From Blepharisma stoltei ATCC 30299 (lineage: Eukaryota > Protista > Ciliophora): a stretch of 64,000 nucleotides of DNA. The stretch is from positions 620,001-684,000 of the forward strand of contig CBFDEM010000018.1 of NCBI GenBank assembly GCA_965603825.1, in the 5' to 3' direction. Positions within the stretch are counted from its first letter, which is position 1, and every line of letters starts with the position of its first letter. The notes beneath the pieces are model-generated. The model worked only from the letters and a program-made list of their open reading frames with translations. It made no database searches and was not told the DNA's origin. Below are positions 19,526-30,433 of the stretch, in pieces. A program made the translations under genes and the position numbers.

Positions 19526-20254
19526 TTAAGACTTTGGGATTTTTTCTTTAGCAGGCTTTGGCTCGCTTTTTTTCGCCTTTTTTGGTTTTGCAGCTGCCTC
19601 TTTTTGAGTAAGATTAAATTTCCTGAGATTCATAGAATTTCCATCTTTAAACCCAATTTCTATTTTCTTATCTAATACTCCTAAAGCCATTCTTGAAAAC
19701 TCAATTTGTTTATTTTTTTCTTTTGCTATAATGGCGCTTTTACTTTTCTGTGTATTCCAATTATATTTTTCTACAAGATCCTTTAGCTCAGAGTCGCAAA
19801 AAAAGCTTGATTTTCCAACTTTGACTTCTAAAAAGCTTCCTTTGTCATCAATCATGTATCTGTATTCGTTATTAATCAGTTTTTTGGATTTGCAGTAATC
19901 ATTTAGCAATTTGTTAGCATGGACTAGTGCTTTTTCATTTGACTCATGATCAGCAATTGGGACTTTTGCTATGAGGCTTGACCTATACATAAGTCTATAT
20001 GTTTTATTTTGCAATTTCATTGTGGCTAAGTTTTTGCCGCCAATTCATTCCCCTATTAGATCATCTGGCTCTGGAGATTTATCATCTTGAAATTGATGAT
20101 GCGGGATAGTTGAATATGGCATGTTTGAAGCTAATAAGCTTGAAAATAAAGTATTTCCAGCTAATCCTGAAGCTAAATCATTAGCGACGATAGAACTTTC
20201 AGAAATCGATCTCAAAATCTACATTATAAGTACTTTGGCAAACTTAAAAACCAT
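19526..20254 (-). CDS. AP2-like + degenerate HNH-like protein, 237 aa
   Basis: ATG 20254, intron 20219-20233, GE(TGA=W)IGGK. FFCD..LVEKYNW..FSRMALG..IGFKDGNSMNLRKFNL parallels HNH_3 'HR.I.G..VDH.DGN.LNN...NL'. The gene model is firm; the family call is tentative. Confidence 0.65.
20219..20233 (-). other. 15-nt intron (gtacttataatgtag)
   Basis: GT-AG, A at -6, in-frame TAG. Links ATG 20254 to the open frame. Confidence 0.85.
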
Positions 20255-21006: not shown

Positions 21007-23391
21007 ATGGCCATTTGCATATCAAACCAGCAGAAACTGGAGCTCTCTCTTGCTGCCTTATCGCAAGACGAGAGAACTAAGGTATTCTACATTTAGCTCC
21101 AAGGCCTACTTGAAAAATGTATCAAGACTAGTGTGGACCCAGTAGAAATCCTATTGAATTCCCGAACCCCAAAACTGAACGATATCTCAGAACCAGATTC
21201 GAAGGATCCTGATTTTTCACAGTGCACGTGAAAAATTTATAATGCCCTTGGTATTTGTTATTCAGTCTATGGTAAACAATTTCCCCGCTGACGGTGCGCT
21301 TCTACACTGGTAGAAAATAATATCTTTATTTTTGGAGGTAGAGGACAAGAAAATCATTCAAGGAATTCTTTTCATATTTTAGACCTTGAGACCAACCAGC
21401 TAGTGACTTTAAAAACGAATGGGATACCAAGACCTAGGGAAGGACATTCAATGGTCACATATGAAAATTTTGTTATTGTATTCGGAGGCTGTGAGGGTGG
21501 AGAAGAAGCTAAGCCTTTTAATGATGTGAGGGTTTTTGATATGAAATCAAGCACTTGGGATTTGTCCAAAGTAAGAGGGCAAAGACCTCAGGGAAGATAT
21601 AATCATGGAGCAGCGTATCTTAACAACCAAATGTTTATTTATGGAGGAAATGGAGGGGAAACTATTTTAAGCGACATGTATTCACTGTTATTACCAAGCT
21701 ATGAATGAAGAGAGCTAACACAAGAAAATTCCCTTCCTGGGCCAAGAGAAAATATGGGTTGTACAGCTGCATGTGATAAAATTTTTATTTTTGGCGGAAA
21801 TCAGCAGACAAATGGGACGAATTTTTCTAACGAGTTATATGAAATAGAAATTATAGAATATACTGCAAACTGTATTAAAAAAATTCCTAATGGTCCAAGT
21901 CCACCAAAAAGAGTATTTCATACACTATTGAATTTAAATGATAAATATCTAGTGCTGTTTGGCGGGCAAAATGAAATATCCATGCTTAATGACGTTTGGA
22001 CTTATGAGATTGCTCAAAATCAATGGGCTGAAATACACATCTTGAATGAAATTGCTGGAAGAATTTCTTTTGGGTCTTGCATCTACAAGAATAGTTTAGT
22101 TGTCTTAGGAGGTAAAGCCTCAGATGGAGTTGTTCAAAGTGAGTTTTCTGTGTTAAATTTTAGTAAATATACTGCTGATGAAACCTCTACGATTTCTTCT
22201 ATAAAGTCTGTTCAAAATTCATCCTCCCCTACCTATTTAGCTTGCCAAAATTGTCAGCATTCTGATGAATCCTGCAATTTCACAGAAAAATTCCCTGAAA
22301 TTGGAAATTTTCGTTCCAATTTTTACGTTCTTACTCCAATTCCTAACCCTGTGCTTAAATATTTTTCAGAAGAGTTTGATAATCCTTTATTGTCAATTCT
22401 AAGAATAGCTGAAATCATCGGGAAAGAAGATTTTAGAATTAAAAATATAGGAAGAGGCTTAGTGAGAGGGTCAACTTATTTAAAAGTGACCCCAGAGCCT
22501 GCTAAAATTGATTTTAATTTTCTTCATGCCAAACTAAACCAAGAATATCATTTAAGACAAGAAATGATAGCAAATTGGAAATCTTGTAAGACTGATAAAA
22601 ACGTAATGATTTTAGGCTTAGAAACATCTGCGATGTATACTCCTGAAGAAATCATGGGATTTTGCAATAATCCAGGCAAAAATAACATTATTTTCCCTCT
22701 GATGAGAATTTCTGAAATTGCAGCCATTGTGAGTAGAAATGAAGAATTTTTAAGTGCTCTGGTAATTGAAAGGCAAAATCAGTTTTCTCCCTGCTTTTTT
22801 GTCGTTTTTGACAAGAGCAATAAGCCTGTTTACCCTATAAAAGAAGCTTATAATGGGAATATTATTAATATCACCAGAAGGAGCCATTTAGATTTACCAT
22901 CTATTTTATCACACAGTTTCGGTACCACAATTTATGTATACTCCTCTGATTTTGAAAGTGAGCTCAATGAAATTTATTACAAAAACATCGAAATGACCAC
23001 TTTTTTAAAATTTGCCTATTTAAAATCCCCATTTCCTCTAAAATTCTATATAAATTCCACACTTATTGAAAAAGACACATCAAAAAAGAATTTTTCAACC
23101 GGAATTGCTTCGAATTCTCAATGGGAAATATGAAAAACAGAAATCGACTTTTTTTCACTATTAATTTATTCCAAAAATAGACTTATTTATTGGGAAACTA
23201 AGAAAAACAATATAAGACGATGTAGGGAAAAGGAGTCAATAATTGTGAAACTTTTAACAGATGAGCTGATATCGCCTATTACAAATCAAATTAAATGGGA
23301 AAAAGAGACCATGTACTTATTTGCTGATATATATAGAGAAGGCACAAAAAGAAAAAAAGGTTTAGCTTCTGATGATTATGTCTATACTTAA
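21007..23391 (+). CDS. Kelch-repeat protein fused to a degenerate MORC-type GHKL/S5 module, about 785-789 aa
   Basis: Six Kelch blades (IFGG, VFGG, IYGG, IFGG, LFGG, VLGG; PRPREGHS, PQGRYNHG). The C-terminal half follows MORC motif order. Intron 21082-21096, four TGA, TAA 23389-23391. Confidence 0.85.
21082..21096 (+). other. 15-nt intron (gtattctacatttag)
   Basis: GT-AG, A at -6, in-frame TAG. Confidence 0.88.
21251..21265 (+). other. Candidate stop-less 15-nt intron (gtatttgttattcag)
   Basis: GT-AG, A at -6. Removal brings the first Kelch W..G..PR spacing closer to that of the other blades. Confidence 0.55.
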
Positions 23392-23452
23392 TCTATACAA
23401 TAATATATGAAACTCTGGTATAAATAATAAAATTTTGTAAGTGTTCCAGCAT

Positions 23453-23641: not shown

Positions 23642-26413
23642 TTAATTAATAGGAAGCCAAGAATAGCATGGATATCGACTTCTAAATGTATCTGGATCAG
23701 TTTTCAGCTGTTCTGAGTATTCATCACGAACTTCTCCTCATTTCGATGCATAAACTTTGACTACAAAAGCCCTATCAATAAACTTATGCACCGTAAGCCA
23801 ATTATTAAAATCTTCAATTTTCAATTTTTTCAAAAATTCAATTTCCTTTTCCCTTCTGTCAAACTCAAAATTCCTCTGCAGAATTTCTTGCCAAAAATAT
23901 TCACTTTTGTCGTTTAAGCTATGAAAAGGCTCTTTTTTCTTCGAAATTACTGCTTTTTTATGCTCTTTGAAATTTTCACTTAAATCTTCTTTGCTTTCTC
24001 TCAAAAATTCGTTAATTTTTTCCATTAAATAGTCAGGATTATACTCTGTTGAGCAAAGCTTGATTAAAAATCCTGACATTCCTCTAGTCATTCTCGAAGA
24101 AACAGCCACATAATACCCCAGCTGCTGATTAGTCCTTAACTCATCAAAAGCATCCTCATCTAAAATTTGTTCTAATAAAGATGCCATTGCCCTTTCTTCA
24201 ATTGTAGCTGTCCCAAATTGGTAATAAATTTCAATGACTGAGCATCCATTTGCTGGGTCTACTGCATTTAATTTTCACTCTAAAATTTGGTCTCTAAGAA
24301 GCATTACAGTTCTGGGTGAAAAATTTTTGACTCTTTTGCCTTCAGCGGCAAATAATAAACCTTCAGTAAATTCACTTAAATCTGAGACGTCACTTTTAGG
24401 GATATTTCCGGTCATATATATGAGAACTTTTACATGGGCTAGGTTGCATGTAATTTCTGATGTTGCAAGCTGCTGGATTACTTCTAATTTATGTTCTTCT
24501 AGATATTGTTGGTGCTGCAAAAAGACAAGTCGTGCATTTCTTGAGTGAGCTTTTGGGTCGATGTTAGCGTTTTTGTATTTTTGGATTAGCCTTTCTATTA
24601 TAAGTCTTATAGAATTTTCATTAGGATACGATGTATAAATATATTCCATTATTTTTTCAATTAAAGCTTCAAGCTTATCTGCAAATCCATTGACTTTGAT
24701 TTCAAAGCAGTTATCAAGAGCATCAATTGAGATATTAAACCCAGCGTAGCTTGCCTGGTACCCAAACTCATCATTTATATCATTTTGTAAGACTTCAGCT
24801 ATGACATCTACAGTCACTGAGCGTAGAGCTGTGGATCTGAAATTTGGAATAAATAAAGCAATAAATGCATTCGCACGGGAATCTCTATATGAAATATCTG
24901 TGTTATACCAAGCTTCTACCATATCAGAATTATAGACTTTTACTGGTTTTGGCTCTTCTAATTTCACTAAATTAAAGTTTGTAGGGATAAATTCATTTGC
25001 TGCTGGGTAGTATAGTTTTTCAGCAATTTCTGGGCTGTTAGGGATTTCTGGTAAATCTTTTATACAGTATTTTGTGCCGAACCATGTTTCTACCATATTG
25101 GCTTCATTTTCATAGAAATTTGAAGTTATATCAATGCGCGCCCTTTCAAAATTAATATATTCAAGCATATGGTTTATTGCATCTGAGCTTAATTCTTCAA
25201 TTAAATCATAAATTCCTGCAGTCAAAACTCTATCTGCTGGGAAATGCTGAAGGGCGTCACTTATTTTTGAGCAATAATCAACAGGCTCCATTCTTTCAAA
25301 ATATTCAAATTCTAACTCCTGCATTTGTTTTAGCTCGTTATAGAAATACATGCAAGGTGTTTTTGATGATTTCAGCAAGTTTATATATGTGAAAATTGCA
25401 TTGATAACAGCCCATATCTGCTCCAAGCCTTTTTTGGTAAGTTTTACTTGGATTCCTAAAGAAAATCAAGATCGGGTATGCTCCATAAATGGCCCTGCAC
25501 TTAAGCCAGTTGCCAGTCCATTTTGTTTTAGAAAATATAAAATACTTCCTTTAGATTCATGTCCTAATAGACTTTCTAAATAGCAGTCTGGTCTCGATGT
25601 ATAATAGCTTCAAAACGGAGGCACCATTCATGTAATATCAATGGTTTTTATGTCTTTTACAGGGACAATACAAAAATATTTATTATTGTTTTCGACGGAA
25701 GGAATTCCTAAGTCTGTGTATAAAGGAGAAATATTTTTGTTAGGAATTTCTGCAAATTTCGCAGACACCCAAGACTCTAAAGTTTCCATATCAATACCAG
25801 GAGAATAAACACACAGTGTCATTATATTCGCTGAATAAAATTGACTATGAAAATTCAGCGTCTCCTGATGCAGATTAGGCTTTTGTGCCAAACTTCTGAT
25901 ATTTCCCCAAGAAAAAGAGTTTATCTTATGCTGAGAATTCAATGAAAACCCAAAAAGTGACTCTCTTCTGACAGCATCGTTTTGTATTACTTCATTAAAC
26001 TCAGCCTCAATGGCTTGGATTTCCCTGCTAGAAGATTCTTCTTTTATAAGCGGAGAAATAAAAAATTGAGCAAATCTATCAAGGGCTTCTTCAAGTTCTT
26101 CTGGGTCAACTTCAAATAAAAAACTTGTGGACCCTCATTTAGTCTCTGCATTGCAATATCCACCATGCTGTGATATAAATTGGCTGAAACTTTTTTCGTC
26201 TGGGTATTTTTCAGTGCCAAGAAAGCACATGTGTTCTAAGAAATGGGCTAATCCTTGCAAATCTTGAGGATCGCTGAGAGAGCCGACGCCCACTGTTAGA
26301 GAGCATGCAGCTTGACCTTCAGATTCTGGCTCGGATATGAGGATTGCTTGAAGCTGGTTAGGAAGAGTTATGTGTTTATATTCTCTAGGGTCGCGAGTAG
26401 GCTTTCTCACCAT
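23642..26413 (-). CDS. Insulysin/pitrilysin family (M16A) metallopeptidase, 923 aa
   Basis: GLAHFLEHMCFLGTEKYP (HxxEH), ALDRFAQFF, LGHE and FDELRTNQQLGY present. Four ORF-track fragments are joined by six in-frame TGA. TAA 23642-23644. Confidence 0.95.
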
Positions 26414-26557
26414 TTCTTATATAAGTTAAAGAAAAGAGAAATGAAAATTGAGAATTTTATATGAGTTCTATTATAGTGAAAAATATTTTTATTTTAGAAA
26501 TTTTTCAGTTAAATTCAGAACAACAATATAAAAATCTCCTAAATATCTTAATTATAG

Positions 26558-27320
26558 CTAGCTGTTTAAGTATTCAACAAAATCATCGATCAGCACAGGC
26601 CAAGCTCCACTTGGATCGTACCCTTGCAGTCCTTCTCTTTCTACAATTATTGCAAAATCCAAAAACATTTCCCAAGTGTCCTTAGAAATATCATGCTTCT
26701 TATCCCTGCTTTCTAAAAATCCAATCCATCGATTAACAAGAGGATATTTTTCCCCAAGCAATAATCTTCATAACGCTATAGCAGTCTCAAACCCTAAATT
26801 CCTCACCCCTTGATCTCTGCTAAAAGCAAATACATAATTATAGATTTCTTTAAAACTTTGAGGGTTATTCAACTCCCGTCTTAAATCAGGAATCTTTTGT
26901 CTTAGTTTAGAAATTTCATCACATCCAAGGGCTTTCATGCCATTGCAAAATTCGTCTTTCGTGTAAATTCCCATGGTCGCTGCATTAAAATATTTAGAAA
27001 TCACTAAAATTACGACATCCATCGGCTCAATCCCTATGTCTCTGCAAAAATTCTCAATTCCTTCCCCTTCTATTTGGGCTGATGTAGAACTTTTGTATCT
27101 TGTAAACAGGCTATCAATTTTTTTCTGATTTGTGGGCGCAGGTTGATCTCTGGATACTTGAGCTCCGGAATTATAAAATTCATCTACCGCTAGCTCAAGA
27201 TCCCAGTTTTTAGACGTAAGGAACTTTTTAGCAGGGACATCCTGCATTCCAGTAATCGACATAAATTGAGCTAGTTTTTCACGTTGTCTGCTATTTAGAG
27301 ACTATATAGCGGCTTACCAT
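26558..27320 (-). CDS. DCN1: DCN1-like cullin neddylation E3 (UBA-like + PONY domain), 248 aa
   Basis: M^SLNSRQREKLAQFMSIT..NWDLELAVD, FKEIYNYVFAF, AIAL(TGA=W), ISKDTW and YDPSGAWPVLIDDFVEY present. Confidence 0.95.
27302..27317 (-). other. 16-nt intron immediately after the start codon (gtaagccgctatatag)
   Basis: GT-AG, A at -6. Its removal puts ATG 27320 in frame with the DCN1 N-terminus. Confidence 0.9.
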
Positions 27321-28768: not shown

Positions 28769-30235
28769 CTATTTATTCGAGCATATTTTCAGTATTTCTT
28801 TTTGTTTTGCAAAAAAGCATCTATTGGCGTCAACAATTCCTACATTGCAGGAACATTTATCAGCGACTTCATTTTCCCCTAGAAGCCTTGCTGGTTTTAT
28901 AGCAGAATGGAAATACTCGCTTGAAAGCTCCCAGTCTTCAAGCTTACTAGTCAAAAACCCAAGGGCAAGCAATGTGTCTAGCTGAATTTTAGGATTCCTT
29001 ATCCTCGTCGCAAATTGAATGCAAGCTTCTAAATTTTGTTTCGCATTTAAATCTTCTCCTAAGCTTAAAAATGACATTCCAAGCTGCCCTAAGCTTATGC
29101 ATTGTGACTCATAATCACCTCTTTTATTAGCCCAATTTAAGGCTTTGGTAAAATACTGTACTGATTCACCATATTTTCCTACTAATCTTGAAGTTATTCC
29201 TAAATTATAATAAGCTGCAAATTTGTTTTCTTTGTCAGAAAATTCACAATGTTTCATATGAAATTGTATGCTCTTTTCAAGCTTATTCATATTGTAATAA
29301 ACAACTCCTAGACGGTTTAAGGCTAATGCAGCACCTACAGGGTCGTCAAGTAGCCTTGCACAAAAGAAAAATCGCTTATAGAACCTTGCAGATTCCTTGT
29401 AGTTTTGGTTTTCTTCATTCATAGCTCCAAGGCAAAAGGACATGTGGGCTTCTTTTTGGACGTCGCCAGCTTGAACCCCAGCCTTTGCGCGTAAAACTAG
29501 ATCTTTTAAGGATGTATTTTGTAAAGCGTCGTTGCCAGCTGGTATTGAAGGTGCCCAACCTCCACCAGGTGTTAAAGGAGCTGCAACAGTTGCATTTAAC
29601 CCTTCAGGAGGCTGTACTTGTATTTGATGATTAAAAAAGCATTTATCCCCTCTTACTTGAGCTACTTCGTTTTCTATTTTATTTATTGATTTTACAGTTG
29701 ATTTTGGGCTCAAAAAATTTTTATTCTTTTTATCCAGCAACAAATCATCAAATTGTTGGGACGCCAAAATTGTTTTAAGTTTCATTAATTTTTCTTCTTT
29801 TGGCTGTACAAATATTTCTTTAAATAGAATCATTTCTCCTTCAGCCTTAGAAATTGGGACTTGCTTTGGCTTATTTTTTGACGGGGTATTTGAACTTGCC
29901 CTCGATTTTCTTGGCATTTTTTTTTCCATGCTTAAGTTAAGAGGGGTAGGTACTCGATTTTGTTCTTGAAGATGGGCCAGAGATTCAGCTTTGGTCAATT
30001 CAAATTTTTTTGAGGAGGCTGAGTTTAGGAGAAGTGCAGCATTTTTGGAATGCCTGCCTGGGGTTTTATGAATTGTGCTTGCTGTGTGGTAGACTTCTGG
30101 GGTAACGATAAACTCAAATTTCTTTGAATTTGATGAAGATGTCATAGGTCTGGAGTCTGCGAGTTTTACAATTTTTGAGCGGCTTGGGGAATCGATTATC
30201 CTTGTAGACCTGTTTCTTTTGAGATCAATTGACAT
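28769..30235 (-). CDS. TPR-repeat protein with disordered N-terminus, 488 aa
   Basis: ALNRLGVVYY, AAYYNLGI and SLGQLG TPR/GPSM-type repeats. Confidence 0.85.
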   Translation of the reverse strand: MSIDLKRNRSTRIIDSPSRSKIVKLADSRPMTSSSNSKKFEFIVTPEVYHTASTIHKTPGRHSKNAALLLNSASSKKFELTKAESLAHLQEQNRVPTPLNLSMEKKMPRKSRASSNTPSKNKPKQVPISKAEGEMILFKEIFVQPKEEKLMKLKTILASQQFDDLLLDKKNKNFLSPKSTVKSINKIENEVAQVRGDKCFFNHQIQVQPPEGLNATVAAPLTPGGGWAPSIPAGNDALQNTSLKDLVLRAKAGVQAGDVQKEAHMSFCLGAMNEENQNYKESARFYKRFFFCARLLDDPVGAALALNRLGVVYYNMNKLEKSIQFHMKHCEFSDKENKFAAYYNLGITSRLVGKYGESVQYFTKALNWANKRGDYESQCISLGQLGMSFLSLGEDLNAKQNLEACIQFATRIRNPKIQLDTLLALGFLTSKLEDWELSSEYFHSAIKPARLLGENEVADKCSCNVGIVDANRCFFAKQKEILKICSNK

Positions 30236-30433
30236 TGTTGATAATAATTAAATTAGAGAGAAAACTATAATTTGATTTTTTGTATAAAAAGCTATTATTA
30301 ATAAAAGAAAAGATTTTAATTAAATAAAGCTGTGGAAATCATGAATATGCTTATTATATGTTTAGCAATAGAAAATGATCATTTATTTTGATAATAAAAA
30401 AGTGTATTTTATATAGTTACAGCGAAATATTTT

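Follow-up and report, generated by a model that had tools for sequence, protein, structure and literature searches.

What remains of a MORC protein when the residues that hold its nucleotide are gone? MORC ATPases stand at the centre of gene silencing in animals, plants and apicomplexans, their mechanism is thought to need ATP-driven dimerisation, and the apicomplexan MORC is essential and controls sexual commitment. The question is raised by a gene at positions 21007-23391 of a 64,000-nucleotide stretch of DNA (the window; C18:620001-684000) from the ciliate Blepharisma stoltei, whose assembled genome comprises 41.46 Mb in 64 contigs. An earlier note, made from the letters alone, had read the gene as a Kelch-MORC fusion with every ATP-binding motif eroded, and as a catalytically dead ciliate paralog that might be a scaffold or regulator for chromatin silencing or programmed genome rearrangement. 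Our analysis points to a transcribed heterotrich protein made of a Kelch propeller, a zinc-knuckle-like motif, a MORC-type module without its nucleotide-binding motifs and a basic tail, which probably serves as a nucleotide-independent adaptor; we give this overall interpretation a probability of roughly 0.6.

The gene itself is intact where the earlier note had placed it. When the three exons are joined and TGA is read as tryptophan, the coding sequence specifies 784 amino acids with zero internal stops, and the product matches the database entry P0001 ('unnamed protein product [Blepharisma stoltei]', 784 residues) at 100%. The unspliced frame contains four TGA codons (at 21229, 21289, 21706 and 23131), one TAG and the terminal TAA, the TAG falling within the first intron; neither intron is represented in P0001. 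In Blepharisma UGA is reassigned to tryptophan and introns are mostly 15 and 16 bp long (PMC9942806), so that four TGA codons read as tryptophan and two 15-nucleotide introns bring this gene model into agreement with the published genome description.

The fold of the C-terminal half, as predicted, carries the assignment. AlphaFold run with a four-sequence alignment (A1) returned a mean predicted local distance difference test (pLDDT) score of 42 and was discarded, while the run with 36 sequences (AF2) reached a pLDDT of 85 and a predicted template modelling score of 0.82, with 254 of the 400 residues at 90 or above. When this model was compared with the Protein Data Bank (PDB) by Foldseek, the top 20 matches were exclusively MORC4, MORC2 and MORC3 chains (E 1.7e-14 to 8e-9, template modelling (TM) score approximately 0.52), followed by Hsp90/TRAP1 at E ~3e-6 and TM ~0.3. 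VIA-align extended the structural match to MORC2/3 as far as model residue 387-388, and the S5 domain, which follows directly on the GHKL domain, is nearer to MORC than to other GHKL families; SMCHD1, Hsp90/TRAP1, Topo VI-B and MutL/MLH1 all lie farther away than the MORCs, by approximately 10 Z units. By fold, then, the model identifies the C-terminal half as a MORC-type GHKL+S5 module, the outcome that the earlier note had anticipated for such a comparison, and we hold the architecture and the fold assignment with high confidence. A homodimer prediction for the module scored 0.00 and, made without controls, is evidence neither way.

The ESM Atlas gives a similar answer. Its own independent model of the protein has HATPase_c_3 and MORC3-like clusters as nearest neighbours, and the AF2 model lies closest to Atlas clusters of animal MORC3-like and plant MICRORCHIDIA proteins (TM 0.57-0.60 over 292-306 residues), with bacterial HATPase_c_3 proteins behind them at TM 0.41-0.49. 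As a separate observation, one Atlas cluster of 413 members, Kelch proteins of approximately 911 residues with no GHKL annotation, also matches the MORC-like module (TM 0.54, 274 residues); it may represent a larger hidden pool of Kelch proteins with cryptic MORC-like parts, and its label 'Viruses 80%' is based on just five records.

At the level of sequence the same affinity is visible in outline. Residues ~395-784 match no Pfam family above its cut-off, HATPase_c_3 (PF13589) does not match at all, and the last 85-145 residues align with Morc6_S5 (PF17942) below threshold, at E 0.04-0.07 and 13.7-14.4 bits against a cut-off of 26.2; a Pfam scan of 36 family members likewise gave no recurring GHKL or MORC family, HATPase_c_3 and Morc6_S5 included. 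Profiles were then compared with the 177,635 distinct sequences of the PDB. The profile of four sequences (A1) had no match there. The profile of 36 sequences (A2) gave four matches; human and mouse MORC3 led the list, at E 0.19 and 0.32, with alignments that fall into two collinear segments (profile 186-251 with MORC3 109-179, and 272-348 with 238-325), and a profile of the S5 half alone placed MORC4 first (E 0.14) and MORC3 third. Because MORCs make up only a handful of PDB sequences, a first rank on two occasions with collinear alignments is very unlikely to arise by chance. HMMER paired MRISEIAAIVSR with MRLGKDAIVFTK of MORC3, and the strings SL..L....K.. and LLIYSKNRLI with SLRAYCSILYLKP and MMYH(K/R/N)NRLI of MORC3/4. 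These are the same aligned strings that the earlier note had given in its six MORC alignments, and the helix alignment agrees with the offset to MORC2 seen in the structural comparison.

A family-specific insertion of approximately 37 residues separates the first beta-hairpin of the module from its motif-II strand; the model renders this insertion as a loop plus a helix at model residues 120-128 (pLDDT 72-80). Lys, Pro, Asp, Asp and Arg are conserved within it, and the conserved columns fall at residues 483, 486, 492, 501 and 507. The equivalences to MORC shift in offset between the N-terminal part and the later part of the domain, which fits an insertion at this place.

In MORC2 the nucleotide site consists of motif I (Glu35, the general base, and Asn39, for Mg2+), motif II (Asp68, Gly70 and Gly72), motif III (Gly98, Gly101, Gly103 and Lys105) and motif IV (Thr119 and Thr197), together with Lys427 of the S5 domain, which contacts the gamma-phosphate (PMC5811534). 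We mapped these columns onto the family using the HMMER alignment to MORC3 together with the offset to MORC2, which holds constant at 37 where the superposition begins. Glu35 falls on Arg456, in a family column of R15, Y4, H4 and K3 that never holds Glu, and Asn39 on Ile460, in a column that is mostly hydrophobic (I8, L6 and V3 among others); the motif-I helix (residues 450-461, PLLSILRIAEII) offers no Glu/Asn pair in any register. The motif-II strand and loop (residues 525-536) have no conserved Asp or Gly. In the motif-III region (residues 545-552, NPGKNNII) the first glycine of the G2 box, Gly98, corresponds to residue 545, which is Gly in 24/32 relatives and Asn in the Blepharisma protein; the Gly101 column is variable, Gly103 is replaced by Asn or Ser, and Lys105 by Leu, Ile or Val. 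Motif IV is kept: Thr119 corresponds to Ser566 (S26 and T3 of 34), and Gly196-Thr197 to Gly629-Thr630 (G in 27/32, T in 19/32). In the S5 domain, which supplies Lys427 in MORC2, conserved Lys and Arg residues come after the LVYWE strand.

Plain pattern counts agree with the mapping. GxxGxG is present in 0/34 family members, DxGxG in 1/34 and there at a non-homologous place, and the strict motif-I pattern in 2/34, whereas in MLH1, the PMS1-type MutL and HSP90 of the same genome, which served as controls, motifs I and II were found where expected. That a conserved E...N, DxGxG or GxxGxG is absent throughout the domain does not hinge on exact residue equivalences. Motifs I-III are missing across the family, in each of the two deep halves of the tree, and the loss is ancient rather than a recent decay. 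The earlier note had said that ExxDN, DxGxG and GxG are absent and that every ATP-binding motif is eroded. The first statement holds for equivalents of motifs I-III across the family, but a literal E-x-x-D-N string, EEFDN, does exist at residues 445-449; in the model it lies in the loop between the first two helices, ahead of the motif-I helix, and 21/33 relatives have Asp where it has Asn. The second goes too far, because the Ser and Thr of motif IV persist, as does one lid glycine in the family, probably for structural reasons. ATP-coupled dimerisation, as canonical MORCs undergo it, is very unlikely for a module that has lost Glu35, Asn39, Asp68 and the lid glycines. We consider it quite probable that ATP binding has been lost, and the same residues suggest a loss of catalysis.

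When 1.84 billion representative proteins were searched exhaustively with the profile, the family came to only 40 clusters, and all full-length members examined combine Kelch repeats with the MORC-like module. The named members come from Blepharisma stoltei and Stentor coeruleus (OMJ77713.1) only, the others being from MMETSP transcriptomes or metagenomes. Source databases call the relatives 'N-acetylneuraminic acid mutarotase' or 'Galactose oxidase/Kelch', recognising the propeller alone. Distant members lie on contigs beside genes for Sec23, an aquaporin, kinases, ribosomal S27e, a CFAP96-like protein, SHIPPO and condensin Cnd3, which are eukaryotic and in part ciliary, and some of these contigs have a guanine-plus-cytosine (GC) content of 50-53% and use the standard code; the family may thus extend past heterotrichs into other protists. 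The contig of the most distant member, P0040 (loci L012/L013), has a GC fraction of 0.53 and is extremely gene-dense, apparently intron-free, standard-code and eukaryotic, with 95% of its length within open reading frames (ORFs) of at least 150 amino acids.

In the Blepharisma genome the family profile finds exactly three loci, namely the gene in the window, C33:710511-711725 and C27:602984-604201, all with the same order of Kelch repeats, knuckle and module, and their modules are 35-36% identical. The tree puts these paralogs within one clade that is separate from the Stentor clade, so the triplication came after that split; the window gene has closer relatives of its own, P0002 and P0004. 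Full-length ORFs are kept across deep branches, up to approximately two changes per site. The genome holds no canonical MORC: all HATPase_c_3 matches above the Pfam cut-off are MLH1, a PMS1-type MutL, HSP90s, hybrid histidine kinases and Topo II. A search of the genome with PF17942 also gave nothing, but the control was silent too, and this result is uninformative by itself. The family thus supplies the only MORC-type module of the genome, in three copies. The gene is not a dead paralog of an active ciliate MORC, as every detectable GHKL gene is of another kind and the search for an active paralog returned the three family copies alone; with no canonical MORC in the genome, the Kelch-MORC protein cannot poison or regulate an active one. 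The hybrid histidine kinases, of which the genome carries several (loci L016, L017 and L019-L022; ~710-750 residues, with HisKA, HATPase_c and Response_reg domains), are signalling proteins of two-component type in a ciliate.

The remaining parts of the protein can be assigned from its sequence. Pfam run on stop-free pieces matched PF24681 at E 2.5e-33 and 8.6e-22, plus Kelch_1, Kelch_3, Kelch_4 and Kelch_6, and hhhhGG blade motifs start at residues 96, 146, 199, 249, 305 and 354; on these scores and motifs the propeller is assigned six blades, the number that the earlier note had counted. The motif CQNCQHSDESC follows at residues 403-413, again as described earlier. The cysteines and the histidine of the motif (C19, C22, H24 and C29) are invariant in the four closest sequences, the pattern C-x2-C-x-H-x4-C recurs in 26/31 relatives that cover the region, and model confidence at the knuckle is only ~50-66. 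It resembles a CCHC zinc knuckle and is predicted to bind metal. At the other end, 28 relatives extend to the C-terminus, and 11 of them, among which are all sequences of the Blepharisma clade and of Stentor, have a basic motif within the last 30 residues; KRKK in the window protein is a candidate nuclear localisation signal.

Transcription is indicated by four public runs of one 2022 study, in which 91-93% of the gene's words are present. The contigs assembled from these runs are confined to the gene body, from ~21052/21109 to 23354-23424, and both intergenic flanks are essentially bare. In contigs of 4/4 runs exactly 15 nt are omitted at ~21250, which is intron 2, and the sole contig that reaches the 5' end (run X4) omits 15 nt at ~21080, which is intron 1. 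Because genomic DNA would retain the introns, we take the contigs to be spliced transcripts and the gene to be expressed; they are mute on expression level and developmental timing. Runs X1 and X2 each contain in addition a second, lower-depth contig of 121 nt over 21951-22071 with the differences 21981 C>A, 22008 G>A, 22011 T>C and 22041 C>A, probably the allele of a second mating-type strain mixed in for a conjugation experiment.

Taken together, the conserved fold, the transcription and the ORFs that stay full-length over long branches argue that the protein has kept a function, one that is not catalytic. The course of events that we propose is that the module derives from the MORC ATPase fold and that the family ancestor lost its Mg-ATP-binding and water-activating residues, with Glu35 becoming Arg, Asn39 becoming Ile, Leu or Val, and DxGxG, the G2 box and Lys105 disappearing. 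The module would then most likely be unable to run the ATP-driven dimerise-and-release cycle of canonical MORCs, and the protein would be an adaptor that needs no nucleotide: its Kelch propeller would bring in partner proteins, and the MORC-shaped body, with its 37-residue insertion, the knuckle and the basic S5/tail part (isoelectric point, pI, 9.4), would form a fixed docking or nucleic-acid-binding platform, probably nuclear. The ancestry of the fold and the KRKK-type tail motif suggest a role in chromatin or genome rearrangement and a nuclear or chromatin location. The chromatin role is the more tentative part of the proposal, and we would place it somewhat short of even odds.

Several points weigh against this interpretation. 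Taken by itself, the MORC signal in the sequence does not reach significance (E 0.04-0.9), and the profile of the GHKL half alone (A3) found no GHKL protein among the PDB sequences, only a chance match to vinculin. The equivalences to MORC2 residues derive from sub-significant HMMER alignments and the range offsets of the aligner rather than from a residue-level superposition, and an unconventional nucleotide site keeps a small probability. The evidence for expression comes from one study, as contigs rather than reads, the RNA nature of the runs being deduced from the spliced contigs themselves. Finally, the nuclear location is predicted from one short basic motif that a minority of the relatives carry (11/28); the other 17 have none at the C-terminus.

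The last point bears on the first alternative, in which the protein has the same MORC-like pseudo-ATPase fold and no chromatin role, being instead a cytoplasmic, cortical or ciliary adaptor of these giant, contractile cells, such as a Kelch substrate receptor or a cytoskeletal scaffold, in which the dead MORC body would serve again purely as a structural platform. Kelch propellers are generic protein-binding modules, and of the PDB sequences matched by this one (the dynein heavy-chain N-terminus Kelch, LZTR1 and KLHDC2) the best match is to a ciliary outer-arm dynein, in the Kelch domain of its heavy chain. The whole protein is mildly acidic (pI 6.3), and some metagenomic relatives adjoin ciliary genes (CFAP96-like and SHIPPO), though such linkage means little in eukaryotes. 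However, every characterised protein with the GHKL+S5 MORC fold works on DNA or chromatin, both a KRKK/KKRK-type tail and the CCHC knuckle are retained in the closest members from Blepharisma and Stentor, and the S5 plus tail part is basic. We regard a purely non-chromatin adaptor as unlikely, if well worth keeping in mind.

A second alternative concerns origin: the module could stem from a different GHKL+S5 lineage (bacterial paraMORC/HATPase_c_3 or MutL, for example), perhaps acquired horizontally, in which case the fusion to Kelch would have arisen separately from that in apicomplexans. In a feature search of the ESM Atlas, bacterial HATPase_c_3 clusters do rank first, and the module has no sequence-significant link to eukaryotic MORCs; the structural comparison with the Atlas orders them the other way round, as described above, and we judge this origin very improbable. 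Slighter still are the chances that the module is a divergent active MORC, binding nucleotide or working as an ATPase through non-canonical residues, to which motif IV, the first G2-box glycine, the E-x-x-D-N string right before the motif-I helix and the conserved basic residues in the S5 loop following the LVYWE strand might be put, since the motif-I helix has no family-wide acidic/Asn pair, there is neither a Gly-rich lid nor an adenine-contacting Asp, EEFDN is not conserved, the GHKL half has no profile-detectable similarity to any GHKL protein, and in MORC2 the single change N39A abolishes ATP binding, dimerisation and silencing (PMC5811534).

How the adaptor that we propose relates to known MORCs can be judged feature by feature. 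Iyer et al. listed MORCs in crown groups, apicomplexans and heteroloboseans without mentioning ciliates (PMC2292703). The literature that we searched contains no description of a ciliate MORC, of a Kelch-MORC outside Apicomplexa or of a naturally motif-less MORC, in line with the earlier note's remark that it knew of none; the supplement of the Blepharisma genome paper does not mention Kelch or MORC, and a literature search for the Stentor locus tag gave nothing relevant. Kelch plus MORC is indeed the apicomplexan architecture, as the earlier note had held, and here too the Kelch part precedes the module. TgMORC and PfMORC (PF3D7_1468100) are, like our protein, alveolate and have Kelch repeats and a MORC GHKL+S5 module on a single polypeptide, and the two fusions may share ancestry; the apicomplexan MORC is a single-copy gene, and TgMORC recruits HDAC3 and ApiAP2 factors. 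The ciliate protein differs in blade number, having six, in its three copies per genome, in carrying a CCHC knuckle in place of the CW finger (zf-CW matched no family member), in the absence of motifs I-III and in its 37-residue insertion. It also differs from animal MORC2/3/4 (PDB 5of9, 9cdf, 5ix1, 6o1e and 7k7t): the module is only 8-14% identical to them, Glu35, Asn39, Asp68, Gly70/72, Gly101/103 and Lys105 are all replaced, and it has neither a CW domain nor the MORC2-type coiled-coil insertion, having an insertion of its own. The MLH1, PMS1-type MutL, HSP90 and Topo II copies of Blepharisma, unlike the Kelch-MORC protein, retain their ATP-binding motifs.

What appears new, on sequence and modelled structure, is a MORC-derived, Kelch-fused pseudo-ATPase family; the MORC fold and the Kelch-MORC architecture of apicomplexans were already known. 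Public annotation misses the MORC-like module entirely, because sources name these proteins by the Kelch domain alone. If our interpretation is correct, a conserved and transcribed MORC body with no nucleotide site would reveal what MORCs can still do once the ATP cycle is gone, a MORC-derived protein would be placed in ciliates, a lineage outside the listed MORC-bearing eukaryotes (PMC2292703), and the Kelch-then-MORC order common to apicomplexans would offer a test of an ancient alveolate origin for an architecture that looks parasite-specific. A bolder version, which we think decidedly unlikely as it stands, is that the fusion predates the split of ciliates and apicomplexans and that heterotrichs dropped the ATPase and kept an ATP-independent chromatin scaffold, today present three times in Blepharisma, for nuclear dimorphism or developmental genome editing; were it true, the protein would be the first pseudo-MORC to occur naturally and would serve as a free-living model of a parasite silencing factor.

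Table. Positions in the window of the Kelch-MORC gene, its predicted parts and the genes downstream of it
Feature	Position	Strand	Remarks
Complete gene, ATG to TAA	21007-23391	+	Three exons: 21007-21081, 21097-21250, 21266-23391; 784 aa
Intron 1	21082-21096	+	15 nt, GT...AG, GTATTCTACATTTAG; holds the sole in-frame TAG
Intron 2	21251-21265	+	15 nt, GT...AG, GTATTTGTTATTCAG
Kelch beta-propeller, six blades	21274-22188	+	Residues ~80-384; from Pfam Kelch matches and six hhhhGG motifs
CCHC-type knuckle, C-x2-C-x-H-x4-C	22243-22275	+	Linker between Kelch and MORC-like module; putative zinc site
GHKL (Bergerat-fold)-like domain without motifs I-III	22324-22974	+	Residues 430-646; fold from the model
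Family-specific insertion, ~37 aa	22483-22593	+	Residues 483-519
S5-fold (transducer-like) domain, MORC type	22975-23346	+	Residues 647-770; includes the signature strand LLIYSKNRLIYWE
KRKK basic motif	23347-23358	+	Residues 771-774, C-terminal tail; candidate nuclear localisation signal
tRNA-Leu, anticodon UAA	23452-23536	+	
M16 insulinase-type peptidase	23645-26416	-	Downstream; six TGA=Trp codons
DCN1-like protein (UBA plus Cullin_binding)	26561-27301	-	Downstream
TPR protein	28772-30247	-	Downstream

The peptidase, DCN1-like and TPR genes downstream of the Kelch-MORC gene are ordinary housekeeping genes with no evident link to it, and its neighbours are uninformative on its function. An AP2-type neighbour would be of interest, given that the partners of apicomplexan MORC are ApiAP2 factors, and the divergent upstream ORF at 19529-20218 on the minus strand had been considered as AP2-like or HNH-like; Pfam does not support that reading, the best match being START_2 at E 0.057. 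The leucine tRNA gene begins 60 nt 3' of the stop codon and lies outside the RNA-derived contigs.

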